A DNA stretch of 64,000 nt from Zygnema circumcarinatum SAG 698-1b (GCA_037447605.1 CM074819.1:1758297-1822296), one strand, 5' to 3'. Positions 10,656-46,701 are shown, counted from the first letter of the stretch. Program-made: numbers and translations. Notes: generated by a model from the letters alone, not told the origin.

Positions 10656-11226
10656 GTCCTGACGTCATGTCACTTCCATCGACGTCATATCACCCACTGG
10701 CAACTTGTCCCTGCCATACCGTAAGTACCGTCCTGAATGACCGTACTGTTTAGGACGTCCGTACCGTTCAAACTCAAAGTTGGTACAGTCAACAGTCCTC
10801 ATATTTTCGCCATGGTTTTGGCAAATATGAGGCGAAAATATTGATTGCGTTGCCGTAGGCAAAAGCTTTGTCATCGTTTTCATCCGTACGATTATTCGAT
10901 TAAGGTGTCAAAGATGATTTTGATGAAAATGGGGTGTAATTTCCGCGAGTGTGACGTTGCCACGTCGCGCGTCCTGATTGGTGTGCTCTTCGTTGGATCG
11001 AATGCGGTTAAAATGGGGTATATCGCGTATTTATGTACTCATAATTACGTTTCGTTTCAACGGGCAGCGTTGAAACGAAACGTTATTCAGTTATGCTTTT
11101 ATCCAGTTAGAAATTGCCACGTTGGTATTGTGGTGTTTTTTTGGATCGTTTGTAGGATATGGGGTATGTTTTTTATCCAGTCGGGTGTTGCCACGTAGCC
11201 CTAAAATGGGAAAAAAAATCAAAAAA

Positions 11227-11290
11227 AAACCACACACAAACTTGACGACAGAATGATGTGTCATTCTGTCGTCAAGTTTGTGTGTGGTTT
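11227..11290. other. Perfect 30-bp-arm hairpin with 4-nt loop
   Basis: aaaccacacacaaacttgacgacagaatga-tgtg-tcattctgtcgtcaagtttgtgtgtggttt. Confidence 0.95.
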
Positions 11291-11494
11291 AAAAAAAAAT
11301 TTTTTTTTTTTTTTTTTTTTGGATTGTGGAACGGAATGTGGTATACGTGTTATCCAGTCAGAGATTGCGACGTGGGTGTTGTGTGTTTTCTTGATTTTTT
11401 GTAGGAAATGGGTCTTATTTTATTCAATCAAGTGTTGCCACGTTGCCAATAATTTTTTATGTTTATCGATGTTTTCAATTTCTATATTATCGTT

Positions 11495-13085
11495 AATTCC
11501 ACGTAAGATGTTTTTAAAATGGCGGACTGGCCGACAGACAAAGTCTTTATAGTCCAGAGGACTGGCGGACTAGCCGACTGACTGACGGACGGACACGCGA
11601 ACTGGCCGACAAACCGACCGACAAACCGACTAACTCGCAGACTGCCCGACGACCGACAGACTGACTGACAGACGGACACACATACTGTCCGACAGACAGA
11701 CGACTGACTAACGGACAGACTGACAGACTTCCCGACAAACTGACAAGCTAACGGACTGACTAAAAACTGTAAAAATTCTGAAAGATTAAAAAAACTGTAA
11801 AAGCGCTAAAAATGCTTAAAATATCTATAAAATTTCTAAAAAACCTAAATAATAACCTAAATATGTAAAACCTTAAAAATCTTAAAATTCCTAAAAATCT
11901 TGAAAATAGAAAATGTCTAAGAAATCATAAAAACCCTTGTTTTTTAGTCTAACACGCAAATTGAGACACGCACAAACATCATCACAGTCGAAAAAAAAAA
12001 AAACAAACTATACAACATAGGGCCCTATGTGTAGTAGTTTGTTTCCTTTTTTTTTTTTTTTTTTTTCTTATTTGTAGAAAAATCACACACGCAAATTCTG
12101 CCGCACACAAAAACACTCGCAGAGAAAAAAAAAAAAAAACAATGTAATTATTACAACATTAGGCCTTCTGTTGTAATATTATTTTGTTTTTTTTTTTTTT
12201 CTATTTTCAGATAAAAGAATGCGCACAGTCAGACAAACATACAGACATAGCCACACACACGCCGACACTCACATAATGGAAAAAAACAAAAACATTATTA
12301 AAGAAGAAAAAGAAAAGGAAAAAAAAAAGGTAAAAGCTCTCTCTCTCTCTTTCTTTTCTTCCTCCTGTCTTCTACCATTCTTCCTACCGGTTTACCTCTA
12401 CAACTCTTCTGTCTTTCTGAAAACTATAAAAGTGGGAGGAATGAGAAATTGAAGTACGAACCTGTTTTGATGCGGATTTCCAAGTTTGACGATTTCCGCT
12501 CTTTTCGATCTTCGTTATCTCCAGGACTGGGTCCTTCAGAAATCAAAGTACGGTTATTTGTCATTTTACATATGAAAATAAACATAGATACGAACCTTTT
12601 CGGTGTTTCTGATTTTCGTTATCTCCAGGACTGGGTCCTTCAGAAATCAAATTAGGGTTATTTGTCTTTTTACATATGAAAATAAACATAGATACGAACC
12701 TTATCGGTGTTTCGGAATTTCGTTATCTCCAGGACTGGGTCCTTCAGAAATCAAAGTATGGTTATTTGTCATTTTACATATGAAAATAAAAATAGATACG
12801 AACCTTATCTTAGTCGAAAATTCCACATAAGAGGTTTTTAAAATGGCGGACTAGCCGACAGACAAAGTCTTTATAGTCCAGAGGACTGGCGGACTGGCCG
12901 ACAGACTGACGGACGGACACAGGAACTGGCTGACAAACCGACCGACAAACCGACTAACTCACAGACTGGCCGACGACCGACTGACTGACTGACTGACGGA
13001 CACACACACTGGCCGACAGACAGACGACTGACTAACGGACAGACTGACAGACTTCCCGACAACCTGACAAGCTAACGGACTGACT
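11495..13085 (+). repeat. Two roughly 265-bp direct repeats rich in GACA/GACG/GACT tetramers (about 11495-11762 and 12820-13083), with three copies of a roughly 105-bp tandem repeat (about 12495-12810) between them
   Basis: Shared ttttaaaatggcggact..gacagacaaagtctttatagtccagagg; three copies of ttcgttatctccaggactgggtccttcagaaatcaaa. Confidence 0.9.
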
Positions 13086-14526
13086 TGTTAGTTAGTAACT
13101 TTCATCTCCATCAACACCTTCTTCTTCCTTCCATACACCATTCTTCCTTCAGTACACTTCTCCTTTTCTTCTTTCTTCTTCTTCCATCTCCTTTCCACCA
13201 TCTTTCCTTCACCACAATCCTCCTACTTTTTCTTCTTTCTCATTTCCACCATTACATCTCTTCACACAATCTAAGCTCTTCATCTTCGTTTTCTTCTTTC
13301 TTCTATTACAACACTCCTTTTTTGCTCACAGCTGATGAGAAGAATTACGAGGAAAAACAGAAGAAACCGTCTAGTGAGTAGCCGAGCGTAAAAACACGTT
13401 TGTTCAGAGAATATAAACAACTGTGTAGTATGATATTGGCGTATTTCACAATACTCTCGTCATCGAAACGTCGTCGGCGTCACCGAAGCGGCACGAAACT
13501 GGTCGTTTTTGTTTTTGTTTTATGTAATCCGGTGATTGTGATTGTCGGTGGACAATGCCTGAAACGGGCTGTTTGTACCGGTGTACAACTGTCACTGTCC
13601 TTTGTTATATTACCGTATCAACTATATTTGTTAAATCAATCTAAGTCCACGCTGATTCACGTTTGTCCTTATTGAGGTCTTAAAAAATCGCAAAAAAAGA
13701 ATCGTCTTGCCTGGAAGAGAAGTTTTGTCGGTCAAAAAATCGTAACCGTAGATTACTCTGGGAAGATGTTATTTTCGGTGGAATCGACTAAATAGCGTAT
13801 CTAGCACGGATTCGTCTTGCCGTAATGTGAGAATCATCAACAGTTGAACCGTATCGCACGTGTGATAAATTCACTTCCGCGATTGATGTCGTAACAAATG
13901 AATCTTTAGATGCGTGCGGGTGCTGAGGATTGTCAACAAAATATCGCAATTACGCAATTACAAAATTTGAAAACAATAAGTAACACATGTACGGTTCAAA
14001 CATGAAAAACAATTAGAGCTGTTTAAATCGATTCGGTTACGTCCACGACGTTTCATGTCCATGTTCATGTGGCATGTTGGTGGCACAACTGCTCCCAACA
14101 TGCCGTGTCGGCGATTGTTATATCAAAAGCGGAATCAAAAGCCGTTCCATATTCTGCAGTTCACAAATTTCGTAACAGTTATGGTGTTGGTTAACAGAAT
14201 AACAGTTAACGAGCTGTTTGTTGGTACAGTTGTGTTGGAGTCCGCCTTGTAGTAAGACAAACACATGAGGTTTGATAAAACAGTTCCTCGACAAGTCGAT
14301 TCGGTATTCTTGATAAATAGAATTGTTCAGCGTTCATTTGCGTTCAAGAAATCGTTAACGGTCTTCATCGTTGTTGCGCGCGTTTCGTGGAAAACTTTTG
14401 ATCGTCTTCACGGTACGATTAGTACTCTTTTTTGTTGAAGATTTAATCTGAATTGACTATGATTTTTTAAAACTATTATTGTATTATATGGTTTTTTGTA
14501 AAATTAACGTGACATAACTTTTAAAA

Positions 14527-17500
14527 ATGTCAGATTATAGTTTACGGAGTTTGAAGAGACGACGGCGAGATAGTAATAATCAATGCCTTCGTGTTTTCAA
14601 TAATGTTGGATGTCATGTATTAATAAATGGTGTTACGACGATTGACTATCAGAATTGCGATGTACAAAATCCAGTTTTTATTGGTTTGAAGCGCATAAAC
14701 GGTAATCAATGGCAAGGTAAACTTACTATAAATAAAATATGGGATTTATGTCTCGGTGTTTTCCCATGTTCCTGTCTTGCTGCTTATGCATACGATTACA
14801 GCTTGTGTAGAGTGAGATGTTCGTCAAGAGAACGACGAAATTTTGATCATATGACGGATTTATCACATTTTGACATAAAAGAGGTTAATATTTGTGTCGA
14901 TAAAATGTTATTTAAGTACGGATTGTTGACAACTCAAGATGGTAATTTCCAAACTGTGAAAGATTTAGGTGTATATGAAAGTGATAATATGTGGACGTCC
15001 CTGTTTGTTATGTGTCATGAAGGACGCTTTTCGTATGTGAAAATTAAAGAAGCTGATAATATCGAAATAACGAAAGTTTATCGCGATATGTTTATGAAAA
15101 AATTGAGTTTTGACAGTTTTTACGGTTTAAATTACGAAAACGATGAAAAATTTATAAATATGTCTGAAACAGATTTGAATATTCTATCAAATATCTGTAA
15201 TGATTTTATGAAGAAAAATTTTCCATCATCGTTTTATGTAGCAAAACATCAATTCTTTGTAAGTACACGTGAAGGTCCAACTTGTGTTTGTGTATGTTGC
15301 AGTCAATTATTTTTTAAGAGATATATGAAAGATGTTCTCCCTTATAAGAATGATGTTCATAAATACTGCGTGGAAGAATTATGTAATAAATATGGTTACC
15401 AAATGTGTTTAAGGTGTTTCAAAAATGCTAATCAAAATAAAATTCCACTATTATCACGTCAAAACATTAAATTTCATGAAAAACCTTCTGTATTACACAA
15501 TTTAAATACTGTAGAAAAAAGATTAATCTCCCCTAGGATACCGTTTATGGTCATACGGGATTTGAAAATAAAACGTCTTGGCCAAATGGGTCTTAAAGGA
15601 AGTGTTGTTAATGTTCCATCTATTGTTAACACGACAGTATTAAAGTTACCCCGTGTTCGTAACGAATTAGAAACAATTTGTTTACGTTTTAAAAGGAAAC
15701 TGTCATATAAGACTGCTGTTTGGTCTGAAACTATTCGTCCACAGGCCGTTTTGACAAGCCTTGCTTGGTTATGTGACCATGGTGAATTATGGAAAGAAGC
15801 AGGTGTTTCTATGTGTGATATCAATGCTAGAATTCTGAGACAATGTCAAACAGATATAGATGTGTTAGGTGCACGAACCGATGATGATGAAGACGATGTT
15901 TCTTCTGAAGGTGAGGCAGTAGATAGTGATGATGATTCACATATGAGTGGTGCAAATATTGAAGAGGATCATAATGATGATGACATTAATATTGGCAATT
16001 ATGAATCTTTATTAGACAGTTCAGACTTATATCCTGATAACATCTTAGAGGTTGCTCCTGGTGAAGATCAAACACCGCTTGGTCTTTTTTATGATGAACA
16101 TAGTGAAGAATTAAGCTACCCAACAATTTTTTGTGGAAAAAAACGTTTTAAAGACAAAAAAATACATTATCTTGATGTTTGCAAGTGGGAATTAAGAAAC
16201 GTTGATAGAAGGGCAGCCACTAACATATCTAATATATTTTTTAAACTACGGAAATATCAAATAAGCCAATTATCTAATATTATCTATGCGAAAATGAGAC
16301 GAAGAAAATTGTCAGGTTTAACGGGTATTAATGCTGGAAATTTACTAGATCAAAAATTCAAAACACAATTATTTAAAAACGACGTCATGTATAGAGAATT
16401 CTCAAAACTGCGTGGTAGCCCACAATACTGGGAACAGAATAGAAGTGATGTTTTTGCAATGTTACGTCAATTAGGAAGACCAACATTTTTCATGAGTCTT
16501 TCTATGGCAGACTCACGGTGGAAAGAGCTGCATGTGATATTGTCAAAAGTAGTTGATCATAAAGATATTACCGAAGATGACGCTGCGGTAATGTCTTACG
16601 AGGACCGTGCCCGTTTGATTCGGTCAGACCCAATCACATGTGCACGTTATTATCGAAACCGTGTAGAGTCACTGTTTAATATTTGCTTGAAAAAATGTCC
16701 TGAAATAATAGGCCAGCTGCAGGACTGGTTTTGTGTTGATGAATTCCAGCAGCGTGGTTCACCACATACGCATTGCTTACTTTATGCTGGCTGTTTTGAA
16801 GATATGTTTAAGAGTAACGGTGTGTTTGATAATAATTTGATGATAAAATTTATAGACAAAAACATAACGTGTTCAAAAGATGCTGTTAGTAATGATCTGG
16901 TGAAACTGCAGATTCACAGACATGCCAGACGGTATTGCAGCCGCAAAAAGAATGGTATGGTCTCTTGCCGTTTTGGTTATCCTATTCCACCAATGCGTCA
17001 AACATGTATCTTAAATCCATTGACTAATATAACAGAAGATGAAAAGGCTGAACATAAAAAAAATTGGATAAGTATAAAAGTCTGTTTAGAAAAAAAAGGT
17101 GTGGATTTAGAAAATACACAGTCTTTTGACGAATTGTTAGACGAACTGAAAATAAATGAACATACATACATGACAGCTGTACAATGGAGTTTAGATCGTC
17201 CTACCGTAATGCTAAAACGCGATGTGTCTGAAATACGCATAAATAATTACAATGCTAAAATTCTGCAATTATGGTCAGCTAATATGGATATACAGTTTTG
17301 CTTAGAACCATACGCAGTTGCAAAATATATCGTGTCTTATATGTGTAAAGGGCAAAGTGGTATGTCATCACTAATGGATAATGCATGCAGGGAAGCTAAG
17401 AAAAAAAATTCAAATCTACAACAGCAATTAAGTGTGGCCGGAAATGTGTTTTTTCGGGCGCACGAAGTCAGTGCTCAAGAGGCTGTGTATCTGGTCCTGG

Positions 17501-20367
17501 GTTTGCCTTTACGTTCTTGTTCAAGATCTGTGCGGTTTGTTAATACTAACAAACCGAATGATAGGTTATTGTTGATAAAAGCAGACAAGGATTTAAAAAA
17601 ATTAAGGCCTGAAGATGAAAATGTTTATATACCAAACGCTTTGCTAACAAGGTACACTGAAAGGCCAGACTTACTTGAAGAGCTCTGTTTAGCTGAATTT
17701 GCAGCATCTTATGATGAGGTTTACAGCAAATCTGACGGCAATGAGGACGGAGAAAACGACGGAAACGATGATGAAGATTCATATCAGGTACATATAGCAA
17801 ACAGCAGTCAACAAGTCTATGGGCCTGATAAATCAAAGTTTCAAAGATATTATCGTTTAAGAAAAAAGAAACACACTTTGAAATATGTTAGAGGCAGATC
17901 AGATGACGAGGATGATGTGCGTCGTGTTTTAATTATGTTATTTTATCCGTGGCGTAATGAAGAGTCATTACAAAACACAGAATATGTTAATCAGCTGTAT
18001 GAACATCACAATGGCCGTATAGAGTCAATAAGACAATTATTTGAAAAAGAAATTGTGAACTGGGATGATCTTTTCGTAGAAATAAGAGAAGAATTACAGA
18101 ATGAAAGAGTCGGTGACATACCGTATACAAATATTATTAATGATGATGTCAACGCAGAATTTGACATGAATCGCGAGCTTGGATTAAATACAGGTTCTTC
18201 TTTTCGCGAATATGTGGTAACAAATAAATTGGTCTCAGATGATGAGTATAAAAATATGGCTAGGTCTTTAAACAGAGAACAAAAGCTTTTTTTTTATCAT
18301 GTGCTTCATCACGTAAAAAAAACAGATGAACCATTACGAGTTTTTTTAACAGGAGGAGCTGGTGTAGGAAAATCCAGATTAGTACAAACATTATATGAAG
18401 GTTTAGTTCGTTTATTCAATAAAGACACAAACACAAACTTTGATGAACCACGAGTTCTGCGTTTAGCTCCCACTGGCACTGCAGCCTTCAACATTAATGG
18501 TCATACGATACATGGTGCTCTAAGTATACCGTATACACAGAGTAAAAATATGTGTCTTACGGATGAAAAAAAAAATACTCTTTGGTCAAAATTAAGCAGT
18601 ATTAAATTTGTCATAATAGATGAAGTGTCTATGGTTGGACAGCGTTTATTTATGGCAGTTGATGATAGACTAAGAACACTTTTCTGTAAAACTAAACCGT
18701 TTGGTGGATTGCACATGCTTTGTGTTGGTGATTTTTTCCAATTAGCACCAGTGAAAGACTCATATGTATTTGCTAACAGTGATCATGATTATTCTGTACT
18801 AGTGAACAGTTTATGGAAAGATTTATTTGTTATGTTCGAACTTACAGAAATTATGAGACAAAAAAATGCGCTATTGTTCGCTGAAATATTGAACAGATTA
18901 CGTGAGGGAAACCATACTAATGATGATATCAACCAATTGAAAAACAGAGTAGTAAGTACAGATCATAATCCTGATTTAACATTAGTACATTTATATCGGG
19001 TGCGAGTCTTAGTAGAAAAACATAATCGTCGTGTTTATGAATCTATGGCAACTGAATCTGTAGAACTAACAGCTGAAGATACAAATACGTACAATACTTC
19101 GTGGCGATTTGTTTTACCAGACGATGTATATAACGATCCTCGGAAGACAGCGCAATTACATTCTGTTTTACGACTGCGGGTAGGTTTGCGAGTTGAAATG
19201 ACAATGAATGTGGATGTTTCGGACGGCCTAACTAACGGTGCAACGGGTGTAGTGAAATGTTTTAGTCGTGTTGACAATAGAGTATGTATAGTTTGGGTGC
19301 TATTTGATAATGCTGACGTTGGCAGAAATCGTAGGGCTGATCTCTCTGCGTATTACGAACGCTTCACAATCTGTCGAGATTGGACAGGTATTTCAAGAGA
19401 ATCACGTTCCTTTTCTTTTGCAAATAATGACCAATGTTCAATAAATCGTTCTCAATTTCCATTGGCTCCAAATTCAGCTATTACTATACACAGAGCACAA
19501 GGGAAAAGTTTGACAGCTGGTTATGTCAATTTGACAGGGAGCATCGGACACGGTATGCATTATGTTGCTTTAAGTCGTTTTGAAACGTTGTCAAACTTGT
19601 GTATATATGATCTAAATGAAAGCAGAATAAAAGTTTCAGAAAATGTAAAAAAAGACATGACCAGATTACGAAATGAATGCAAAATGATTTTATGTCCTGC
19701 TGAAATAAACGTAAATAATAATATAAACGCAATTCATATTACTTATCAAAATATTAGATCATTAAAAAAAAACAAAGTTGAGTTAGAAAATTCAACACAT
19801 GTTGATTGTGATTTGCTTTTAGTAGTTGAAGCATGGCTGTCAAGTACTGACGACTTTAAAAGTCTTGAAATAGCTGGTTTTTCAAATCGTGGATATGTAG
19901 GTGATAGCCACATTGACAATAGTCAACACGATGGTATAATGTTGTACTCAAAAATAAATATTAGATTTATTAAGCAATTTAAAAACATTGGCTGTCATTT
20001 AGTTTTAGTGCGTACTACGAAAGGAAATAATGTTATATTCATATGTGTAATATACCGTAAACCGAAATCTGTATCGCTTATGTTTATAGCTAATAAAATA
20101 AGGGATATGATTAAAAATATTAACGGGAAAATTATTATAATGGGTGATTTTAATGAAGACTGGTTACTTACACCACACTCAATAGATGTTACAAATTATA
20201 AGTCTGTAATGGAGTCATTAGGTTTTAAACAAATCATACAGGAATCAACAACAGAGTACGGGAGCATGTTAGATCATGTGTGGATAAATTCAAATTGTCA
20301 TGTTATTGCAAAAGTGATGGAAGCTTATTGGAGTGATCATAATCCTGTATATTTGCAAGCAATGTGA
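14527..20367 (+). CDS. Helentron RepHel transposase: Cys-rich N-terminal region, HUH Rep, PIF1-family SF1B helicase and C-terminal AP-like (EEP) endonuclease, 1946 aa, intronless
   Basis: Rep DEFQQRGSPHTH and KYIVSYMCK; helicase TGGAGVGKS, LAPTGTAA, IIDEVSMVG, GDFFQLAPV, LTEIMRQ, QFPL..AITIHRAQGKS, YVALSR; EEP motifs YQNIRS, VEAW, IYRKP, MGDFN, LDHVW, WSDHNP. Confidence 0.96.
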   Translation: MSDYSLRSLKRRRRDSNNQCLRVFNNVGCHVLINGVTTIDYQNCDVQNPVFIGLKRINGNQWQGKLTINKIWDLCLGVFPCSCLAAYAYDYSLCRVRCSSRERRNFDHMTDLSHFDIKEVNICVDKMLFKYGLLTTQDGNFQTVKDLGVYESDNMWTSLFVMCHEGRFSYVKIKEADNIEITKVYRDMFMKKLSFDSFYGLNYENDEKFINMSETDLNILSNICNDFMKKNFPSSFYVAKHQFFVSTREGPTCVCVCCSQLFFKRYMKDVLPYKNDVHKYCVEELCNKYGYQMCLRCFKNANQNKIPLLSRQNIKFHEKPSVLHNLNTVEKRLISPRIPFMVIRDLKIKRLGQMGLKGSVVNVPSIVNTTVLKLPRVRNELETICLRFKRKLSYKTAVWSETIRPQAVLTSLAWLCDHGELWKEAGVSMCDINARILRQCQTDIDVLGARTDDDEDDVSSEGEAVDSDDDSHMSGANIEEDHNDDDINIGNYESLLDSSDLYPDNILEVAPGEDQTPLGLFYDEHSEELSYPTIFCGKKRFKDKKIHYLDVCKWELRNVDRRAATNISNIFFKLRKYQISQLSNIIYAKMRRRKLSGLTGINAGNLLDQKFKTQLFKNDVMYREFSKLRGSPQYWEQNRSDVFAMLRQLGRPTFFMSLSMADSRWKELHVILSKVVDHKDITEDDAAVMSYEDRARLIRSDPITCARYYRNRVESLFNICLKKCPEIIGQLQDWFCVDEFQQRGSPHTHCLLYAGCFEDMFKSNGVFDNNLMIKFIDKNITCSKDAVSNDLVKLQIHRHARRYCSRKKNGMVSCRFGYPIPPMRQTCILNPLTNITEDEKAEHKKNWISIKVCLEKKGVDLENTQSFDELLDELKINEHTYMTAVQWSLDRPTVMLKRDVSEIRINNYNAKILQLWSANMDIQFCLEPYAVAKYIVSYMCKGQSGMSSLMDNACREAKKKNSNLQQQLSVAGNVFFRAHEVSAQEAVYLVLGLPLRSCSRSVRFVNTNKPNDRLLLIKADKDLKKLRPEDENVYIPNALLTRYTERPDLLEELCLAEFAASYDEVYSKSDGNEDGENDGNDDEDSYQVHIANSSQQVYGPDKSKFQRYYRLRKKKHTLKYVRGRSDDEDDVRRVLIMLFYPWRNEESLQNTEYVNQLYEHHNGRIESIRQLFEKEIVNWDDLFVEIREELQNERVGDIPYTNIINDDVNAEFDMNRELGLNTGSSFREYVVTNKLVSDDEYKNMARSLNREQKLFFYHVLHHVKKTDEPLRVFLTGGAGVGKSRLVQTLYEGLVRLFNKDTNTNFDEPRVLRLAPTGTAAFNINGHTIHGALSIPYTQSKNMCLTDEKKNTLWSKLSSIKFVIIDEVSMVGQRLFMAVDDRLRTLFCKTKPFGGLHMLCVGDFFQLAPVKDSYVFANSDHDYSVLVNSLWKDLFVMFELTEIMRQKNALLFAEILNRLREGNHTNDDINQLKNRVVSTDHNPDLTLVHLYRVRVLVEKHNRRVYESMATESVELTAEDTNTYNTSWRFVLPDDVYNDPRKTAQLHSVLRLRVGLRVEMTMNVDVSDGLTNGATGVVKCFSRVDNRVCIVWVLFDNADVGRNRRADLSAYYERFTICRDWTGISRESRSFSFANNDQCSINRSQFPLAPNSAITIHRAQGKSLTAGYVNLTGSIGHGMHYVALSRFETLSNLCIYDLNESRIKVSENVKKDMTRLRNECKMILCPAEINVNNNINAIHITYQNIRSLKKNKVELENSTHVDCDLLLVVEAWLSSTDDFKSLEIAGFSNRGYVGDSHIDNSQHDGIMLYSKINIRFIKQFKNIGCHLVLVRTTKGNNVIFICVIYRKPKSVSLMFIANKIRDMIKNINGKIIIMGDFNEDWLLTPHSIDVTNYKSVMESLGFKQIIQESTTEYGSMLDHVWINSNCHVIAKVMEAYWSDHNPVYLQAM

Positions 20368-22420
20368 TGACTTTGAAATCTTAATATTTAATGTTTTAAG
20401 TTACTGCAGAGGAGAAAACATGTGGAAAAATCTAATTTCACGCAGGTTGATAACTTGATGGTGTTCATCATGAAGAGGTATGTCACGAACTTATGATTAA
20501 AAAAACTCCGTTATTTTTATGTAACAAAACAAATTGTTATTTTTATATGGAACATTTACAGCAACAATAAATAATTAATTGTATGTAACAATGATAAATA
20601 CAGATTATGATTATCTTCATTTGTAAGTAACTGCACTTAAAAGAATTTTTTTTTTTTTTTTTTTTAAGTCACAATATTTACACTACTGTTTTACTATTTA
20701 CAGAGAAATTGCGGGACGCAAATCAATAATCTTCAGCAATACAACAAAACTCTGAACAGCCACAAAGACGGAATTAGCATTGAAGTTGTCTTTTATGACA
20801 TTTCAATGTAGGTAAGAACACAAACAAACAACACTCTCAAAAATATTAACTCTCAATATTTCATATCATAGATGTTAATTCAAACATTGTTTGTTTCATG
20901 ATGATGCAGACAGAAGTAAAAATAGATCATCTCAATTTTTTCTGCAAAAAACTATGTCTACACACCAGTCGACATACATGTGTACACAAAAAAATCAGGT
21001 AACAAAGTTCCACCTACAAAACGATTCTAAATACTTATAGTAAAACATTGACTAATAACATCAATATTTGGAATTGCAGGTGTGGATAGACACCAACAAC
21101 ACCGCACAAGAACGAATACACACTTATTTCGATGACATCAAGCAGATCTCAAGAATATTACAAGAAAGATTGTAGCGACATATACATTAATGTCTGCTAT
21201 CAATATTATCTTCAAATCACAAGAAAAATAAGTAGATGGTTTTTAAAGAGATGTTGGCGTATGCAATGACAACATATCTTAGATCGTATCTTACCTATGG
21301 TTTGACTAGGATTTTCTGTATATTAACAAAATTCTACTTAGACGTTTACAAACTATAAACAAAAACTTTGAAGTCTCTTAAAAACTTTTACAGCAATATC
21401 AGACTGCCGTCCGCGAACTCCAATTTTGTTGCGTCTCGATTCGTCATTCAATGTCTTCAACATACTTTTCACATCATATGATGCTGACACAAACATGTCG
21501 CTTTTTGTGTTGCGCCTAAATATTATAAATGTGCGCGTTTCGAAAATCCTAATCACGAAACGTACATCCGACGAAAACGGTTTGTTTTCTAAAATGTATG
21601 AAACAGCAATATTGCCAAATCAAACTTAATACTGCTGCGCAAAAAAAAACGTACACAACATTTACTTAAAAGAGCACTGTATAAAGTCATTACCTAAAAC
21701 AACAATAACAAAAAAAAAAAAAATAAACGTCCAAAATAATCCAAACAGAATAAGGGCCAACCTCCATGAGCGTTTGTCAGTACCGCCACATCGGATTAGA
21801 GTCAAGAAGGGAGAATTCCGGGTTCCATCAGAGGTCGCGCTAGCCAATCAGCAGTCGCCACGTTTCGTCCACTGTGATGGGGTTTCTTGGGCATGCTGCA
21901 CAAGTGGCGTCCACTGATTAGCGCGCGTTGGCGGCTGTGCGCCAGCGGGGCCGCCGTACCTCCGTGGCATCTCGAACGGATCTTTAACGCCACGCGGCGT
22001 CGCACGATTGGAAAAATCAGGCGTAATTCTGGGGAATTTTTTTTTGAGGGGCTGTTCTGGGGAACTACGACTGTACCTCCACGTCGGTCCTAATCGGTCC
22101 TAGTCGACGCCACGACGGCGCCACATCATCCTCCAAAACTACGCCTGTACCTCACGTCGGCGAAAAAACGCTGATGGACGTTGGCCGTAAAACTTCTCCG
22201 TTAAGAACAATAACTCAATCGACGTTTAAAAGACGACAAGTTCAAAAAATCTTTGATGATCGAATCTCAACACCCCATTCGGAACCAACACATTACGGTT
22301 CACGTGACGCAAACTTTCATTGAACTCGCGATGGCGAGGCCATCAAATTTACATGGATAAAGGCAAAATGTGGAACCACGAAGGACTGGTCACAAAGGAC
22401 CGAAACACAATAAAACGAAG

Positions 22421-23044
22421 CTAGGAGCGGAAAACTACGCCTAGGCACAACAACGCAGCCCTAGAAGCAGCCGCGAAGGTCACCGATGTGAGGCACGTCG
22501 CGAGGAGGGAGCGGCGGAAGTCCACCAACACGGTCACCAACAACTGNNNNNNNNNNCAGAAGGCGCCACACGAATTGTCGGGATGAGACCTAAACCGCCC
22601 GCCGAAATAGGGAGCGAGGCTTGCGTACGTGCAAGCGGACCCTCCGGTCGATCGAAAATACCAGGACCCAAAAGGCGATGACATACAGAAAACAAACGCT
22701 CATCGAAAGATTGCAATGACTCAAGGAAAGCAGGGTTAGGAGGGAGAGTTCGCAAAAGGTATGACGGACGCAAAGCAAAACAACGAGTAAGCAAAGAAAA
22801 AGCCACCTGAGGATCTGAAAGATGTGGAAGCTCATCGACCTGAGACGTATCCTCAACCAAAGCATCATCAACAAAACGATCAACATAAGATGCAACGCCG
22901 AAAGGGCAGCCTAAAACACGAATACCAATTCCATCAGCACAAGTCTGGATACCACAAGGGAGCGAAAGGGTAGAAGGGATACCAACCGGAGACCAAGCAA
23001 AACACTTCGACAAATTTACCGTCAAACGCATAGCGGCCAATCGA
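22421..23044 (-). mobile_element. 5'-truncated non-LTR retrotransposon RT fragment (CRE/R2-like clade by motif), nested in the Helentron
   Basis: RLAAMRLTVNLSKCFAWSP..GIRVLGCPFG..PQVAFSLLTRCFALRPSYLLRTLPP..QASLPISAGGLG, typical RT thumb/C-terminal region; GC-rich against AT-rich surroundings; N gap inside. Confidence 0.75.
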
Positions 23045-23652
23045 GTAGTAAAATCAGATTCACGTGAACGCCGTTTTGCAGATAAAAACACGAGTTCAAT
23101 AAACACGTTTAACCAATCAAAGATAGCCATCGCACGATTTAAACCGTCCGCCGTGGTGCAACAAGGTTCCCGTACGTACGTCGCCGTCGACATATCTGAC
23201 GGTTTGCAAGAAACGACGCACGTCTGTCGTTAACAAGGCGTTGACGCATCCATCCCGCGTGGCAATAGCACTCTTGAATTTTTCGGTTGTTACGGAGTGA
23301 CACGATATAGGTCGTACAAGTCTGCCTTTTCGTATGACCGTTTTAAGGAACGGTGTCTCTTCTGTACGTGACAGCCACGTCATCGCCACGTCTGTGAAAC
23401 TGCTACATAGAAACCAACCGTTGTTGTCCTCACGACGCCACGTAAGAATACAGAACTGATAGTATTCTACGCTTAAGCAAATATTACACAGTCATCACAA
23501 AACCGAGTTTAATTGTCGGTGCAAGTAAAATACAGTTGATTTTTAACCGACAAACCTCTAACTTCTCGTAAGAAAGTTTATCGTCACAGCAACCGAATTA
23601 AGAGGTTACATTGTTACGTAACAACTGAAACAACGGTATCATGTAATATAAA

Positions 23653-26117
23653 ATGTCAATGACACACATACGCCTAAACACTGCCAACGTACACGGAAGA
23701 AATAACACTTCCTACTCTCAAGCTCACGCAATCATGAATCAAAACGCGGACACACATATTTCTGGAGCGGAAGAATTATATGACGGTGTTCATCGTGAAA
23801 TGGTATGTTCACATGCATCAGGTGTAAAAACCAAGACGATAATAATTTTTATACAGTTCAAAACATCGAACTTTGTTGATCAATATTAATGACTCTATTC
23901 TAAAACAATCATATTTTTTTATCTAACTATGAATAGTTGTTTCTAATTTGTTATAAAACATGAAATATTTAATCCAGGACAATATATCTGGGTCGAACGG
24001 AGCATGCAGTTCAGGCGGCAAACTGATTTCAGAAAAAGTAAGTGCCGAAAACAAACTCTGCACAAAAAGAAAACAAATACAATATTTATGAGAATATGGA
24101 ATGTGGCATCATTATGCAACAACATCTGTTATTAGTTTACTGACTTATCTTATTTGTATGGTTTATTTACAGGTTATCACCAATACACCAAAGCTATTGT
24201 TTACATCTTTATCAAACACGTTAAGATCAGATTTTCACATGATTCTCACTATCGAGCATATTACTCTCCCAAAAATTGTTAATCAATCGTGTGTAGCAAC
24301 AATGGACGTATACGATGAAGATGGCGTTCGTTTCATGTTTGAAAATTGGGGAAAAGATACAGATATCAACGACATGACAGAAACTTTCTTAGGATACAAG
24401 GAAGGAGATGCAATTCGAATAAGCAATCCGTTCGTAAAAGAAACAAAAGATATGTAAGTGTCACGTTTCTTTTTAATAATACGGTATTTTTATCATGCTA
24501 AATAAACAAACAGAACAATCTAACTACAACCACCGTGTTTCTTCAAATATTGCAGATACAGGCGATACGGATCTACATACAAATTGTCACCTACGAAAAG
24601 GACGATCATTGACGTCTTAGAAAAATCAGAGAAAAAACAGTTCAAATTCGTATCCCCGCCGCCACCAAAAAATCTGTCCGTAATCAACGAAAATGTCAAT
24701 GTAAGACAATTGCTACCAGCTGTAATAACTAATATGGTTTGTTTTTTTTGCACGAAAAAATTATCGTCAACATAAAAGTGACAGAATGTAATTAAAACGT
24801 TTCTGTTTTTTTGTCTATGATTGCAGATAATGTTCGACGTCCAAGGAATCTTGAAGAGCAGACAAGAAATAAAACAAACTCAAACAAAAAATGGCTTCAA
24901 ACCATATTGCGACATTGAATTAGAAGATTATACCCGAATTCGGAAAATAACATTGTGGGGATATGATACAGACATCATCCATAAAACAGGCGTAAGAGTG
25001 GGTGAAACAGCAATTCGACTGACAAATTGTACATACACAGGAAACATGCTCAAAGTGACGTCCTCGTAAGTGTTTTAATCAAATAGTTCGTCATAATCCA
25101 AAACGACAAACAAAGATATCAAAAAATCAAAAATCACAATAACACATTGTTTTATCTGTTGTGTACTTACGAGAATTTTGCACATGTGTTTGGTTGGTTT
25201 CAGGACAACAATTATATTTCTGGCAGATGAACGCACAATCACAGCAATACATGGGCCAACAGGAATAAAACGGACCCATCCATTGGCTGGAGTTGAAACA
25301 GATACGTTGAGGTAAACCCAAAATTGAAAAAAAAAACCATAAGATAATATCAAAAAGTTTATGTTTTAACGATGTTAACACGTGTGAACATGTTTATTGA
25401 TAACGAAAATGTGATTGAGAATAATACCGAGATGAGTATGACCATTATGGTGCACACCGAAAGCGCACGTGCAACCATTGCTGAACGCTGCAATCGCGTA
25501 ACGGACGGTGGAATCTTTTGTAATGCACCAGCATACCCCCGTGTTCCGAATGGGCCAATGGAATGCAGAATCCACGGAGAAACAGCAACCATGAAATTTC
25601 TTATTGTATCTATCACAATGAGAGATGCAAGTAAGTAACTACTCTTATTGCAACATAAAGTCTGAATTCTTTTGTAATTTGTGATTTCTCTGCATTTTCA
25701 TTTTCTTTTTTTTAAACAAAAAAAAAAAAACATGTTATGTTCCCAACTTTGATCTCCACGTCTTTGCTGTTCACAGATTCTGAAAAAAGAGAAGCGAAAA
25801 TCTTCCCACATTCTTTCAAATTCTTGACTGGTCATACAGCAAGCACATTCGACAATTTATCCGACAGCAACAAAAAAAAAGAATTACAGAAACTCGAGGG
25901 AAATTTTGCTGCAAAGGTAAAAGACATACTTTTATATCGTCATATTGTACATTTAATAATTATAATTTGTCGTAAAAACTAATACTACAATTGTGTGTAC
26001 ATGATACTGCAGATTAAAATGAAAAGAGATGACGCAAAAATATTATACCAAATCGAAGACTTGACACCTGCCGAAATAAATGTGGTGTACAAAAAAAAAC
26101 ATAAGGTGAAATCATAA
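23653..26117 (+). CDS. RPA70-like multi-OB-fold ssDNA-binding protein with short introns, carried by the Helentron
   Basis: From about 24172 onward the exons splice in phase to ..MDVYDEDGVRFMFENWGKD..EGDAIRISNPFVK..FKFVS..FDVQGILKS..TKNG..DIELED..KITLWG..KVTSSTTII..ERCN..FCN..ECRIH..ITMRDANSEKREAKIF..LTGHTAS..FAAKIKMK, resembling RPA70 DBD-A/B/C with a Zn ribbon; 5' exons and start codon less certain. Confidence 0.75.
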
Positions 26118-28129
26118 TCACCTCAGCTTCTCCTCATCTTTATTATCTTTTCTTCTCTTTTTTTTCGTAACCTCTTTTTTTACGCTCCTCATTTATCTCG
26201 CTCCACTTATTTTTCGCTCCCTTCAAATATCACTAATATCTTCTCGCTTACCTCCTCACGTTTTCTTTAAACACTCTTCTGCCACTCGTACACCGCACTT
26301 CCCCTTCTCGTCTAATACCTGAACGTTCTATCAAACCTTCTCTTTTTCCCATTTTCCACCAATATCTACTTTTTCATCTATCTCCATTCTTTCTTCTCTC
26401 CTCCAATTCCATCTCTTTTTTACACCTCTAAAATTATTCTTTACAGACTGATTATAATTATAAACACATTGGCATTGCAGATAACACAAGATGCAGACGA
26501 TGAAGATCAAGGTTACGATGTAACCCTTTTCAATGGCTGACAAATAAGCAGTCCATACAGAATACGTACATCAAAACCAAAATCACAGCTTTCAATTCAG
26601 TATCAGCGACAGCAACATTGTCATATCTCTTCTGACATCATCACTTTCCACGTCTACTTCATCACCAACCACCACAATCATAACCATCAACCTTCAAAAA
26701 ATATGTACACATGTCAAATAGATTTTGCGAGTATAGCACTTTTTGTTTTTATTATTATTTCAGTAGTTTTTCCCATAAGATTTTTTTTGATTCGAGTGAA
26801 CATTTGTATACGCTATACTCATGATTTCTTGTTTTTTTTAAAAAAAAAAATTTATCTGTCCTGCCTTTGTGCCTATCATATCACAGCTTGCAAAAGTTTT
26901 GACGCCTCCGTACTTACTTTAATCTGTTTTAATACCTGCAAACAAAAATAAAAATAAAACATTCCTACTATCCTCTACACATCCGATTGCTTCGGCACCA
27001 GCAATTGCAGCAGCTCTGAATTCGGCGCTAAACAACGTAAAGTATTCGTAGAATTCACTACAAGCCATTTTTTCTACTAATAATATTGGCAAAAACCCAT
27101 TCATACGATGGACCATCTCATATCTGTCAACTGATATTTTCACTACTGAAACTGAACTAAAAACTCGATTCTTCAGAAATCACAACATATTAATTACTCA
27201 TAATTAACTAAATTCATCCAACAAAAACAAAAACTACAATTAAATCACAAAGTCGAATGAATAAATAAAAATATTTTCGTCATAGAGCACGCGAAACAGC
27301 CGCTCTCTTCGACTGAAATCGCACAGCTCCAATAGACTCCAAGTCTGAAGCGGATTCCTCATTACAGAGAAAACTATTCCTTGCGGCAGTGACATCCGCA
27401 CTACAAGCGTACTGTATTCGCTCACTGCAAAGAAAACACGACTTCTTCCTCTGCGCTTGATAAATTGCCATTCCGACGATGACACCACGGTATTTCTGTA
27501 ACCCTAATACGAGCGTCATAGCCACCGATTGACTGTCCCTTTAGACGAACCAACTGATGGAACACCGTTATGCCCACACTGCAATAAATGTTCAGTTTCA
27601 TTACCATTACATGAAAACGGTTCGGTTGAAAGGCCGTTAACTATAAAACTGTAACACGAAAAAAATCGGTTCGTACACATCGAAAAAATGAGCCACGTTA
27701 ACATCTAACAGACATCCGTAAAATAAAACGAACCAAAATTTGCCACACTATGCGATTACGGTTAACCAACAAAACTGATAGTATCGTACCGGACTGGTCT
27801 TGTCAACAAACATTCATGATTCAAAAGACGACAAGCGTAAACTGCTGAAAAATACACACAGATCGAAAATATAAATAACAACATGCTACACGTACGTTTT
27901 ACACCATACAGTACGACCGACATTGCCGACAGTTGTTGCCGGTACAAAACCAACTATTCAACTTCTAACTTCCAGTTAGATATTACCGTGACTAACCTCC
28001 GCTAAAAACTTCTACACGTCCACGTTTACACAGCAACAACAGCAACATGTACTATAAATTACCAACAAACTTGAGTGATGTCAATCACGGAGCAGCCTTC
28101 AGAGTTGAGGCTTATTATATCCTTCCGTC

Positions 28130-29446
28130 ATGACATCAAACATCAAGCGTTTACCAGTAGAAGTATTGGCGAAGATATTACAAATATGTATTACTCAGTC
28201 TTGTATGTTTATGCAAACAGCTATCCATCTATCAACAGTAAGCAAACATTTCAAAAATGCTGTGCAGGCTTTATCAATTGCCGTTATTGACAACAACTGC
28301 GCACACCGTATATCAACTTTAATATCCGATTCTTATGATGAAGCTATATATATTGCACGACAATTGTCATTCTTTCCACATCTTCGTGAATTGGTACTCC
28401 AATGCTCATCAATACCAGCAGTGATGTTTGATTATTGGACAACAACATTTGGGAAGACATTGACTACGCTGACAATATTATACTCTAATAACGGATTGAA
28501 TTGGAGTCATTTCGCGGCTTTATCGGAATATCCGTGCCTTGAAAATATAAACGCTTACATAGAACTTACAAATATTGAAAACAACCAACTGAAACCTCTT
28601 AAAAAGTTGAAAACCATTTATGCGACATTATGCAAAAGCGCAAAACGCCAAAATGACGAAATTACAAAAAAGACGTTTCAACGTTTTCTACAACTATTCC
28701 CTAATCTTCATGAATTACACATATATAATGATATTGACACCAGACTGCTGCTCATTCAACATTCGTCGTTGTATAATATTCTTATCAAAGGACAGGCAAC
28801 AAATCTGCACATTGATTGCTCAAAATTGCAACGGCTTCGAGTTGAAGTAAATGGAAAGATACAAGAATTTGTCGTTTCATGCGAACAATTGAAGTATCTT
28901 GACATTAGCAATGACATCGACAACCTTCATTTTATTAATAAAAAACCATTCATCACCCGATTAACACTACAATCACTTGAAAATAATATCGCCTGCACCG
29001 AACAGCAATTGAATATAGAAGAGTTGCACTGTAATGGATATTCTACGTATTCTACATTTGAGTTTTTAGTAAAGAGCAAAAAAACGTTACAACAAGCAAA
29101 GTTTACTTATTGTTATGCACAGTTTGAACTGTCACATGTTTTCCTTCATGCTAAAAAATTTCCAAAACTGATGATGTGTACATTTCAAAACGTCATGCAC
29201 GCAGATTTTTTAGACATAATATACTCACTTTTGAGAGTTTGTCCTCGTCTACATCATGTTAATTTTCAACTAGAGACATCTACAGCAAGAGATTTAGACA
29301 ACCATTTTATCAAAAAAGAAGAGACTATTACAACAAAAGTAAATAGAAAAATCTGGACCAGCATAGTTTTTATGTTGGTGACAAGTCGTGGCACAGTTTT
29401 CAATGACAGATGTCATAAATTATTTGTAAATATCGACACAAATTAA
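28130..29446 (+). CDS. Intronless F-box plus LRR-like protein, 438 aa, Helentron cargo
   Basis: N-terminal F-box-like KRLPVEVLAKIL..LSTVSKHFK followed by LxxLxL repeats (LRELVL, LTTLTIL, LENINA, LKTIYA, LHELHI, LQRLRV, LKYLDI, ITRLTL). Confidence 0.75.
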   Translation: MTSNIKRLPVEVLAKILQICITQSCMFMQTAIHLSTVSKHFKNAVQALSIAVIDNNCAHRISTLISDSYDEAIYIARQLSFFPHLRELVLQCSSIPAVMFDYWTTTFGKTLTTLTILYSNNGLNWSHFAALSEYPCLENINAYIELTNIENNQLKPLKKLKTIYATLCKSAKRQNDEITKKTFQRFLQLFPNLHELHIYNDIDTRLLLIQHSSLYNILIKGQATNLHIDCSKLQRLRVEVNGKIQEFVVSCEQLKYLDISNDIDNLHFINKKPFITRLTLQSLENNIACTEQQLNIEELHCNGYSTYSTFEFLVKSKKTLQQAKFTYCYAQFELSHVFLHAKKFPKLMMCTFQNVMHADFLDIIYSLLRVCPRLHHVNFQLETSTARDLDNHFIKKEETITTKVNRKIWTSIVFMLVTSRGTVFNDRCHKLFVNIDTN

Positions 29447-29689
29447 AAACTATATAATATTGAAGACTACGATAAACAAATTTATCTTTATACATCATAT
29501 TTTTTTCAACGAAAATAAAAAAATTACAAAAAAAAAAGCCCTTACTCTTTTCTCTGTCTCTCTTTTTATCTCTATTCTCTTTTATTTGTTTTTTTCCTTT
29601 ACTCTCTCACCAACTTCATCACATCTTCATCTATATGCACTTCCTGTATTCCCTTCATTTTTTCTGTTTCTTTTCTCTGTCTCTTTCGT

Positions 29690-30520
29690 CCATGTCCAAA
29701 AAAAAGGCCAATGCAACGTCTACTTCATACAAATCTCTTTCTGACAGAACAAAAGAGCTTTCGGCATTTTTTTTCCCCATATAAATAATAATAATAAAAA
29801 AACACAAAAAAAAAAAAAACCTGATATGATAACGACAAAAAACCAACCAACAGAAAAGATAATAATAACACAGACGCAGAGAACTCAACACGATGACTCT
29901 TTATAAGTCTGTTCGAGCAACACGTAACCTTAAAAACTAACCCTAAAAACCGTCAAAAAACGCACGGCGAACTGTACGGAAAAGTTGCACAGCGATCACT
30001 CGTACAAACAAATCTCCGTACATAATGTAAAACAGTTATCAATATTATAACAGCTCTACGCGCACAACATAAAACTTTGACCATAAAAAACCGCGATATA
30101 CGAAAAGTCGTAAACGCTAATGCAGCGTCTATTTCATAGAGATCTTTTTCAGACAGAACGAAAGACGATTCTCCAATCCTTTTTCCCATCTTAATAATAA
30201 AGAGGAAAAAAACCCAAAAAAAAAAGACACCTCTGATGATATTAAAAGAAGAGAGATGAAAAAAAAACTACAAACAAACAAACACACAGACAATTACACA
30301 GGATGACTATTTATCAGTCTGTTCCTGCTACTGGAAACCCTAAAAACTAACCCTAAAAACCGCCACCACAGCGAACCGCAAACTGTACGGAACGGTTGCA
30401 CAGCGATCAAACGTACAAAAACCAATCCGTACATATTGTTTAACAGTTAGCACTATTATAACCGCCTTTTTAAAGAAAGAGTACGCACACTACATAAACC
30501 GTCGACCAAAAAACCGCAAT
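29690..30520 (+). repeat. Diverged tandem duplication of about 410 bp near the Helentron 3' end
   Basis: Paired segments aaaaactaaccctaaaaaccg..actgtacggaa..gttgcacagcgatca..cgtaca near 29930 and 30340. Confidence 0.75.
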
Positions 30521-30709
30521 ACACGTACAATCGTAAACGCACAACTGTAAAACGTACAACGATACGAACTCACGAAACCGATTAAAACAACGTCGTATAC
30601 AAAACAAAACAAATCGGTCAACATGCCAAAAATACTGTAACAAAATCAAATCGAAATCGTTTTTTGCGATCATAATCACATTCTAACAAACACAATACTT
30701 TAGAATCAC

Positions 30710-31737
30710 AAAAACATGTGTACAAACAAAAACAGCCTCCACCATATCAACATCCAACCATGTGAAACACTACGGTATTTGTCCCCTCCACCACTTCGCT
30801 GTTGGAGTGGGGGACTGATCCCCGCTGCTCCCGGCAACACCTCGTGTGTCACCCTCCACAGGAACTCGTGTTCCCACCGATGTAGACATTCCCACTCTTT
30901 CACTCTCAAGGCTCTATCTCAATTCACTCATCGCCCATAACTCACAGAATGAACACCAGAGATAAGCACAGCGGAAATCAATCGAGAGAAGTGTAGGAGA
31001 AAGCTCACGGCTCTAAAACTCCTTTATAATAAGATGTCCACCCACATGAAGTTCTCCCACCACTACAAGGTAAGTCCCTCTTACTCACTACCTCACGACA
31101 CAAGTGAAGGCAGCCTGACAGCACGAGCAGGCACAGAATAAGAGACAGAACTAGTATGGTTATTTTTCCCATAGTAAAACTATGCACTATATANNNNNNN
31201 NNNTCACGCCCGCCATTGCAAACCCATGCACCGTGGGCGCACTCAAGAATAGCGACCGGAGAGTGGCCTCGCAAACCTACGACGACACCGACCTAGTTCT
31301 TGTCTGTCCGTACAATAGTCCGTACAGTTCCGCCGTTTCGTCAGCCTTCCTTAGCGATCTTCGCCCGCCGACACTTCGGCCGTACATACGAACCAGCGGA
31401 CCCACATCACGAGTGGTCCACGTGGCGCATTCCGATTCGCCGCCAAGTATCTCCCATGTCGTTTCCGCGCCGCAACTTTCCGCTCCGCGTTTTGCGCCCG
31501 CGCCGCGACCAATCAAAGTAGCGCGTCCGTACGTCGCGCACTCGCGTCAGCGCCGCGACCAATCATCGCCGCTCGTTCGAACTCCGCGCACTCGCGGCGC
31601 ACTCGCCTAAGTCAGAACACCGACATCACTAAATCTAGAAGCACTACGCCTAGCAGATCTCATGTTCAACAACTGAGTACCACAACAAGTTAGTGTGTCC
31701 AATGTAATGTCTAACTATCATACACTAACACTAACAT
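30710..31737 (-). mobile_element. LTR-like fragment, related to 33247-34573 in opposite orientation
   Basis: Shared aaggagttttagagcc..agctttctccta..ttccgctgtgc and tgttagtgtat..tagttag; similar peptides WEHEFLWRVT and MERELRWRVT; no TSD found. Confidence 0.4.
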
Positions 31738-32508
31738 TCGCGCGATGTCCCTCACGTCGCAGACCTTCACGGCTGCTTCTAGGAATTTATTATTGGTACT
31801 AAGCGTAATTATTCACTCTTTCCTTCGATCTTTCGTGTTTAAATCCTTTGCGACACGTCTTTCAATAATTCATGTGTTACATATATTCATGACATTTTAA
31901 TGATCATTCCATCGTCAATTCAATACAATTTCTCATTCCATTATTTTCGGTTTTATCACAGACATATTACCTTATAGTCACGTTTGTCTTAACATACAAC
32001 GACGTTTTGTTTATTCTTTCCTTCTGTGTTATACGGGCACGTTCGCCAAAGACGTCTCTTACGCCACACAAAAAAACTTGAACTCACACAAGTGAAAACA
32101 ACACAACTAAAACTACAACATCATACACCCAAGCACACGAAATCAAGATATCAAATACATCGTATCCAATAGGCCAACAGTCGACACACACGTGTTCCAT
32201 GAATTCTTATTACAATACACTTCACAAAATTATAAAGAAAAAAAAAAACCTTCAAAAAGGCAACGCACGAGGATCTTGATCCGCAGCCTCTTATTTTTGC
32301 AAATAGAAGGTTCGTGTTACCAATAGACGGGCGGTATTGTTAGAGTTCATGTTAGAGTTCATGTTGGACCGTACGTATCGTACCGACTCATATCGTACCA
32401 CATCGTATCGTATCGTATCGTATCGGATCCAAAAAGGAGGAAAGACGAGCGAGCGCCTCTTACGGCGGCACGAGCGGGAAGATTCGGTGAGTTTTGCTGA
32501 AGCCCGTA

Positions 32509-39732: not shown

Positions 39733-39783
<51 letters not shown>

Positions 39784-39940: not shown

Positions 39941-39977
<37 letters not shown>

Positions 39978-46658: not shown

Positions 46659-46701
<43 letters not shown>

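Follow-up and report, generated by a model that had tools for sequence, protein, structure and literature searches.

The question raised by the DNA considered here, a 64-kb window of the genome of the zygnematophycean alga Zygnema circumcarinatum SAG 698-1b (all coordinates below are positions in this window), is what to make of a block of low GC content, running from 10846 to 32295 (35% GC, as against 52% for the host), that splits a high-copy host repeat in two. An earlier note had described it as a self-contained, virus-like module of three genes, all on the plus strand. The answer reached here is that the block is probably a structurally complete, autonomous-type Helentron (group HLE2, endonuclease-bearing) that has inserted into a T-run of the repeat. 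The plus strand was confirmed for all three proposed genes, and of the module the Helentron core stands, together with an OB-fold gene that is probable; the third gene, an F-box-like open reading frame (ORF), is an orphan whose suggested role in manipulating the host is conjecture.

Alignment shows that the left and right flanks (10780-10845 and 32296-32420, plus strand) are the two halves of a single dispersed host repeat, one that is present in high copy in all the DNA runs examined. On inspection of the sequence, the left half of the host repeat stops at 10844, reading ...GAGGCGAAAATATTGA, and the repeat picks up again from 32296 as TTTGCAAATAGAAGGTTCGTG, the sequence from that position running TTTGCAAATAGAAGGTTCGTGTTACC. 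Two intact paralogues of the same repeat, aligned at 32520-32620 (plus strand) and 35380-35460 (minus strand), provide empty sites for comparison, reading respectively ATTGA-CTTT-GCA and ATTAA-TTTT-GCA; set against these (ATTGACTTTGCA, ATTAATTTTGCA), the filled site reads ATTGA-T/TGCG...CTTATT/TTT-GCA, where the slashes mark the junctions. The insertion therefore falls between a T and a T within a T-run, as seen against the empty sites, and there is no target duplication. Because T-runs flank both sides the breakpoint within the T's is ambiguous, and the ends are exact to only about 2 nt; by the T/T convention they are placed at 10846 and 32295, making the whole plus-strand insertion 21,450 nt long as assembled, including two gaps of 10 N each. 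The proposals that the host repeat, which the note called a miniature inverted-repeat transposable element (MITE), is broken at 10845 and resumes at about 32296, with an empty site nearby, and that T-runs are the target, are thus both upheld. Contamination or a chimeric assembly was rejected, as at each junction the assembled sequence runs without a gap into one of the halves of the single host repeat.

The block contains an intact ORF of 1946 amino acids (aa) at 14527-20367 (plus strand), encoding a transposase in which a Cys-rich motif, a DUF6570 domain, an HUH Rep domain, a Pif1 helicase and an APE-type endonuclease are found. The probability of such a frame being open by chance is about 1e-59. 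All of the Pfam matches are above cut-off (PIF1, 100.1 bits; Helitron_like_N, 84.5; DUF6570, residues 304-423, 54.7; Exo_endo_phos, residues 1759-1938, 28.7 against a cut-off of 24.5), and in an alignment of nine proteins, comprising the algal transposase and eight Helentron proteins from the databases, the residues expected for catalysis are invariant throughout: H747, H749, Y934, Y938 and K941 of the HUH domain, the Walker A (GGAGVGK, 1276-1282) and Walker B (DE, 1365-1366) motifs of the helicase, and N1742, E1768, D1874, N1876, D1916 and H1938 of the endonuclease. The intact RepHel-APE ORF that had been proposed is therefore confirmed, with its Rep, Pif1 and Exo_endo_phos domains all above cut-off and its catalytic residues all conserved. 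Since DUF6570 is a marker of HLE2 (HELIANO, PMC11417382), the element is, as judged from its sequence, an endonuclease-bearing Helentron of that group.

A search among 5.8 billion proteins returned 391 homologues of the transposase, of which the best 120 are Helentron-type proteins, many of them with OTU or Herpes_teg_N protease domains. Corals, echinoderms, a hemichordate, bivalves and insects are the main sources of the named homologues within these best 120 of the 391, two entries bear the label of bacterial metagenome-assembled genomes, and the top identity is 37%. In a FastTree phylogeny the branch leading to the algal protein is long (1.39 changes per site) and isolated, and falls outside every animal group. 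Recent transfer from a sampled animal was considered and is rejected, given a best identity of 37% and a long branch that is not nested in any animal clade; the "animal-style" appearance of the protein is a reflection of what the databases contain and does not point to a donor. Exact-protein look-ups using the transposase and the F-box-like ORF gave no match.

At the 5' end is the repeat TGCGTTGCC (10846-10854, plus strand), complementary to GGCAACGCA at 32259-32267, which is subterminal in that it lies 28 nt short of the 3' end; each copy occurs just once in the window, and as good an inverted match was reached in 7 of 20,000 shuffles (p ~3.5e-4), so that the 9-bp asymmetric inverted repeat claimed for the ends holds good. 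A short hairpin, TTGCC-gta-GGCAA (10850-10862, plus strand), has its left arm nested in the terminal repeat, an arrangement described as the 'IR' of DINE-1 (PMC4067079). Further in are two perfect palindromes on the plus strand, at 11047-11083 (16-bp stem) and 11227-11290 (30-bp stem), located by repeat search and DNA folding, for which the folding energies are -21 and -36.7 kcal/mol (z scores of -7.3 and -14 relative to shuffles); where a single 5' palindrome had been proposed, there are accordingly these two in addition to the small hairpin. Five subterminal direct repeats of about 30 nt each (10940-11447, plus strand), four with the exact core TTGCCACGT and one with TTGCGACGT, are candidate transposase-binding sites. 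The core TTGCCACGT has 8 matches in the window where 0.31 would be expected; the possibility that the 4 outside the element mark related elements was rejected, those at 60393, 60652 and 60690 belonging instead to a host cluster of CCACGTGG (G-box-like) at 60390-60700 and that at 48773 presumably to another. Next comes a non-coding block of repeats (11483-13085, plus strand) made up of (GACA/GACT)n-type arrays at 11560-11761 and 12898-13085, which form a direct repeat of 280 nt at 93% identity, together with three copies of a tandem repeat of 104 bp (12503-12809); DINE-1/HINE elements have a comparable microsatellite and 'central repeats' (PMC4067079). The 3' end (32259-32298, plus strand) comprises the inverted repeat already mentioned, a palindrome at 32271-32282 and a T-run at 32294-32298. 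In one read run (X5), three contigs match from 32254 on, over the element's final 40 nt, but have unrelated letters (AAGGTTCGAAGACATTTCTAT) before that point; these contigs could be graph branches at a repeat, or other elements with a common 3' end.

The second gene, at 23653-26117 on the plus strand, is probably a multi-exon gene for an OB-fold, single-stranded DNA (ssDNA)-binding, RPA-like protein, for which the present model is incomplete. It contains two OB segments (24170-24453, and 24556-24700 plus 24827-25066) and a Cys-rich piece (25372-25630), and most of the pieces are joined by four in-frame, stop-free introns with GTAAG donors and TGCAG/AT acceptors; a splice-site search found no exon link between 25066 and the Cys-rich piece at 25372. 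In a language-model comparison the neighbours of 24821-25066 and 24170-24448 were OB-fold ssDNA binders (RFA1-like, Ssb-like OB and POT1), and the former piece also matches a Sulfolobus SSB (E=0.02). No Pfam or PDB match was found for 25372-25635, the pattern C-x9-C-x14-C-x2-H there having been read by eye only. One relative of the element (L001, with a RepHel 36% identical) has a 277-aa ORF downstream on the same strand as its RepHel, with a weak REPA_OB_2 match and a zinc ribbon; searching the algal element with this protein (tblastn) gave nothing significant. In two other relatives no RPA gene was called, and it is likely that gene calls of this kind would miss spliced genes. Taking the segments, their splice sites and the L001 counterpart together, an OB-fold (RPA-like) gene most probably does belong to the element. 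A faint GIY-YIG match was also noted in L001 (L001:23233-23541), downstream on the opposite strand; GIY-YIG is a captured domain in a Sphagnum HLE2 family (HELIANO, PMC11417382).

The third gene is a 438-aa orphan ORF at 28130-29446 (plus strand), having an F-box-like N-terminus (RLPVEVLAKIL...VSKHFKNAV) and a body resembling leucine-rich repeats (LRRs). The F-box pattern is LPxE(V/I)LxxIL...VSKxF, and by eye the N-terminus fits it. A 438-codon frame in DNA of 35% GC would be open by chance with a probability of about 6e-14, and because its GC content at third codon positions (GC3) is 0.31, compared with 0.26 for the transposase and 0.54 for a host gene, the ORF fits with the transposase rather than with the host gene. 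Language-model neighbours of the ORF were F-box families at 0.95-0.96, and the ten best family-bearing neighbours all fall in one clan, a result that a third of shuffled proteins also reach. No homologue was found, whether by a word-index search or by an exhaustive HMMER scan of 1.84 billion representatives; a sequence search of the PDB gave an LRR protein at E=0.3 only, and the loci of four relatives of the element held nothing similar. The ORF is probably carried by the same element as the transposase, and it is the only part of that element that goes beyond published Helentron architectures. Its most likely function, suggested here only tentatively, would be to act as substrate adaptor in an SCF ubiquitin ligase of the host. 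A single [LI]xCxE-like motif, IACTE, occurs at residue 287 (28988-29002 in the window). Motifs of this type are found in retinoblastoma-binding proteins such as nanovirus Clink, and the present one is only a pointer, since by a rough estimate (not computed) about 1 in 10 such proteins would contain one by chance. Downstream of the ORF lie two tandem copies of a unit of about 410 nt, 73% identical (29703-30540, plus strand; self-BLAST).

As to whether any of this is transcribed, and how widely the element occurs, contigs assembled from read runs (Logan) were compared with 27600-33500, and the transposase was checked by sequence words. In a run that the tool guessed to be RNA (X16), 27600-30317 is covered, with no splice joints, by contigs that are 100% identical, one of which may begin near 26772; this run gave no depth over 30358-30751, almost none over 31737-32130 (0.04 in the first bin) and no transposase words, and in none of the RNA runs were such words found. 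In X16 the repeats are about 10-20 times as deep as unique sequence; in the DNA runs this ratio is several hundred. Taken with the pattern of coverage, this low ratio fits X16 being RNA, with transcription confined to the region of the F-box-like ORF; that ORF is therefore probably transcribed while the transposase is not. The stretch that is probably transcribed extends into the tandem copies at 29703-30540, up to 30317. Turning to DNA, a 7802-nt contig (approximately 23028-30829) was recovered in identical form in two studies at depths of 47.7 and 110.1, matched by depths of 46.6 and 101.5 for the 3' unique part in the same two studies, and on the evidence of contig depth 27600-30829 and 31709-32283 are single copy. 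A further DNA run labelled as the same species (X7) contained none of the roughly 3.5 kb of unique element sequence examined and none of the transposase words, and it covers the same host repeat families with a similar spread of identities. Some accessions thus appear to have the element and another to lack it.

The physical unity of the element needs separate discussion, as two of the 13 runs of ten N in the window lie within it. Neither falls in any of the three genes, whose reading frames are thus independent of the gaps, and both are in GC-rich segments resembling host repeats. Gap 1 (22547-22556) is in the first of these (21746-23460, GC 0.505), part of which (22312-22433) resembles a host tandem repeat at 35679-36128 (units of about 80-160 nt, 73-81% identical). 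This segment also contains a 219-aa ORF of no known family on the minus strand (22534-23193); an interpretation of it as the tail of ORF2 of a long interspersed nuclear element (LINE) was withdrawn, Pfam and PDB having given no support. Gap 2 (31194-31203) is in the second segment (30751-31870, GC 0.514), a high-copy host repeat with a summed depth in the thousands, compared with 48-110 for the unique parts, and with similarity to host sequence at 33776-33890. Gap 2 is crossed collinearly by contigs of the repeat family (X7 record 27, 660 nt over 31077-31706, and X16 record 13), implying that its two sides are neighbouring parts of one repeat unit and that only some tens of bases are missing between them. 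A search of the borders of both segments for target duplications (8 nt or more) found none, so nested insertion and capture are indistinguishable here, and the segments are host repeats that either entered later or were captured. A 123-nt inverted similarity (72% identical) between 22380-22502, just left of gap 1, and 31741-31863 means that the OB-fold and F-box-like genes are bracketed by related host-like repeats, which might have inserted separately, as members of one repeat family, or might be the two ends of one larger insert. The three unique parts of the element have GC contents of 0.352, 0.350 and 0.353, and their trinucleotide compositions correlate with one another (r of 0.99 and 0.90) and not with that of the host (r of about 0). 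This shared composition, the matching depth and the joint absence from X7 favour one physical unit, for which the length of 21.45 kb is an estimate. Of the check that had been suggested, for reads across the N gaps, one part succeeded, in that contigs of the repeat family cross gap 2; no contig examined runs out of unique sequence across a gap.

A number of points must be set against the interpretation of the block as a complete three-gene Helentron. At the termini, the inverted repeat has 9 bp compared with 12-16 nt in HLE2 and 13 bp in DINE-1, and where a 3' hairpin had been claimed before the T-run there is only a weak stem-loop, GGATC-tt-GATCC (32271-32282, -4.3 kcal/mol, z +0.41), which 125 of 200 shuffles equal in folding, so that this claim is weakened; nor does the 64-kb window contain any non-autonomous derivatives (HINEs) or siblings with the same termini. 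For the accessory genes, the piece at 24821-25066 matches REPA_OB_2 at E=7e-4 with 19.9 bits, below the cut-off of 27, and the F-box-like ORF is similarly below cut-off in Pfam (F-box, 16.6 bits against 20.5; LRR_At5g56370, 22.9 against 27). AlphaFold run without an alignment gave models that are useless in both cases (pLDDT of 38 for OB segment 1 and 37.5 for the F-box-like ORF), and tblastn comparison of the accessory-gene pieces with the loci of four relatives revealed no significant similarity. The earlier identifications are weakened to match: the RPA70-like gene keeps its two OB-fold segments, canonical splice sites and L001 counterpart despite scores below threshold, while of the F-box/LRR gene there remains a real open frame that is probably transcribed, with sub-threshold Pfam scores and no homologue. 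As regards assembly, gap 1 lies in a repeat and joins the contig with the transposase to that with the other two genes, no bridging read having been found in the contigs compared over 27600-33500. Finally, for the read sets, being missing from contigs does not prove absence, and the classification of X16 as RNA is, as mentioned, a guess made by the tool.

These points leave room for other interpretations of the locus. It might be that the middle contig (22557-31193), carrying the OB-fold and F-box-like genes, was placed by the assembler between gaps bounded by repeats, and that the true element is shorter and has the transposase only. The setting of both gaps in repeat-like GC-rich segments, the fact that there are 13 such gaps in the window, the lack of any contig among those examined that runs from unique sequence across a gap, and the bracketing of the middle part by related repeats (22380-22502 and 31741-31863) would all be in keeping with this. 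However, the middle part has a GC content of 0.350 and correlates with the transposase part in trinucleotide composition (r=0.99), unlike the host; it is single copy by depth, level with the 3' terminal part; X7 lacks 27600-30751 just as it lacks the transposase words and the 3' unique part; contigs of the repeat family are collinear over gap 2; and L001 likewise has an OB-fold gene downstream. A misassembly of this kind is accordingly regarded as very improbable. Accepting, then, that one Helentron carries all three genes, one may still ask whether the F-box-like ORF (perhaps the OB-fold gene as well) is only passenger cargo, captured in a former host, incidentally transcribed and with no role in the life cycle. 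Helitron-like elements often capture genes, an F-box-associated domain being among the captures catalogued by HELIANO (PMC11417382), while no relative examined has a similar ORF, and with no homologue anywhere searched its conservation across elements cannot be shown. Against this, the long frame has stayed open (438 codons in 35% GC DNA, P ~6e-14), its GC3 is near that of the transposase (0.31 and 0.26) and unlike that of the host gene (0.54), and it is probably transcribed. An open frame, GC3 and transcription speak for a gene that has been maintained, but not for one with a part in transposition, and the passenger explanation is considered somewhat unlikely.

It is also conceivable that the insertion is an old, silenced and immobile relic, in which case its foreign look would simply be the element's own composition and X7 would be either a different lineage or an instance of assembly drop-out. 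The element is not brand new, given the two host-repeat segments inside it; its transposase words are in no RNA run; it is single copy with no sign of amplification; and it has a very long isolated branch in the tree, from which no donor can be identified. Yet the frame of 1946 codons remains open with every catalytic residue intact, and X7, which covers the same repeat families, has none of the roughly 3.5 kb of unique element sequence; for these reasons a relic seems unlikely. At the opposite extreme, one might propose that the Helentron encodes its own SCF adaptor, expressed while the transposase is silent, that causes degradation of a host protein (for instance a cell-cycle brake or a silencing factor), and that the element arrived recently by horizontal transfer and is still mobile in some strains. 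If true, a rolling-circle transposon would for the first time have been shown to carry a factor that manipulates its host, and by analogy with viral systems it can be entertained, but it is a decidedly speculative proposal that would have to be called improbable. As to the arrival itself, horizontal transfer is possible, as suggested by the foreign composition and the isolated position in the tree, with no donor that can be named. The reading preferred here therefore remains that of a structurally complete, autonomous-type Helentron.

Were such an element to move, established Helitron and HUH biology would suggest the following course. The HUH Rep domain would nick one strand at the 5' end, and the nicked strand would be peeled off in the 5' to 3' direction by the Pif1 helicase until it reached a stop, marked presumably by the 3' subterminal repeat and the short palindrome. 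The released single strand, or circle, might then be coated by the element's own OB-fold protein before being joined between two T's at a new site, where the C-terminal endonuclease may nick the target.

The closest parallels in the literature are other Helentrons, which were already drawn with an RPA ORF by Thomas et al. in 2014 (PMC4067079). Helentron-Mo-1A from the mite Metaseiulus occidentalis and the partners of Drosophila DINE-1 have the same Rep-Pif1-APE ORF together with an RPA-type ORF (PMC4067079), and also share insertion at TT with variable numbers of T's, an inverted repeat with a terminal 5' copy and a subterminal 3' copy, a nested 5' hairpin, and microsatellite and central repeats. 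The algal element differs from them in having a repeat of 9 bp rather than about 13, a marginal 3' stem-loop, no OTU or Herpes_teg_N domain that could be found, no non-autonomous derivatives seen, a streptophyte alga as host and a protein identity of at most 37%. In the plant lineage, HLE2 has been found in 13 land-plant species, overturning an earlier view that it is absent (HELIANO, Li et al. 2024, PMC11417382), and hosts of its subgroup b, in which the endonuclease domain is enriched, include land plants (PMC11417382). One such family, HelenSM92 of Sphagnum magellanicum (PMC11417382), is likewise an HLE2 of the plant lineage and shares with the present element DUF6570, T-T insertion and inverted repeats that are short and terminal; compared by description, it has a captured GIY-YIG, where in the alga there are an OB-fold gene and an F-box-like ORF. 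Captured domains catalogued by HELIANO include RPA, Ssb-like OB and the F-box-associated domain (PMC11417382), but RPA in HLE2 was there reported upstream of RepHel and in subgroup a only, while in the alga it is downstream of an endonuclease-bearing RepHel. A full-text literature search for Zygnematophyceae together with Helitron returned, to judge by titles and abstracts, no paper on such elements. The suggestion that the combination of three genes was unreported in a green plant is thus weakened, because land-plant HLE2 has been in the literature since 2024 (PMC11417382) and Helentron RPA genes since 2014 (PMC4067079), and what survives of it is the F-box-like gene, which goes beyond the published architectures.

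More distant comparisons can also be drawn. The canonical plant Helitrons (HLE1) likewise have a rolling-circle RepHel with a downstream RPA70-like gene for ssDNA binding, but they have 5'-TC and CTRR-3' ends and insert between A and T, without terminal inverted repeats, endonuclease or DUF6570, and none of the HLE1 end features is found in the algal element. Nanoviruses are rolling-circle replicons with an HUH Rep too. Nanovirus Clink and polerovirus P0 offer examples of a replicon-encoded F-box protein that plugs into host SKP1/SCF (PMC3588083), this being an analogy only, without sequence similarity.

Elsewhere in the window, a host ORF at approximately 52193-53332 encodes a RAY1-like beta-arabinofuranosyltransferase (Nucleotid_trans, 119.7 bits), 76% identical to a protein of Mesotaenium endlicherianum, its closest named relative, 69% to Closterium and 40-48% to land plants; these identities by themselves place the host among the zygnematophycean algae. 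Two regions are strand-skewed, namely 44000-47000 (GC to 0.64, with a GC skew of -0.81) and 38000-41000 (GC skew -0.5, AT skew -0.45); they have long ORFs on both strands with no Pfam match, and are probably low-complexity or satellite-like.

Intact autonomous Helentrons for which both ends and the empty site have been defined are uncommon, and we know of no Helentron that has been shown experimentally to transpose. With its conserved catalytic residues, its single copy and its apparent presence in some accessions and absence from another, the present element might serve for a test of whether Helentrons move in a streptophyte alga, and would be useful for asking what the endonuclease and the OB-fold protein of such elements actually do.

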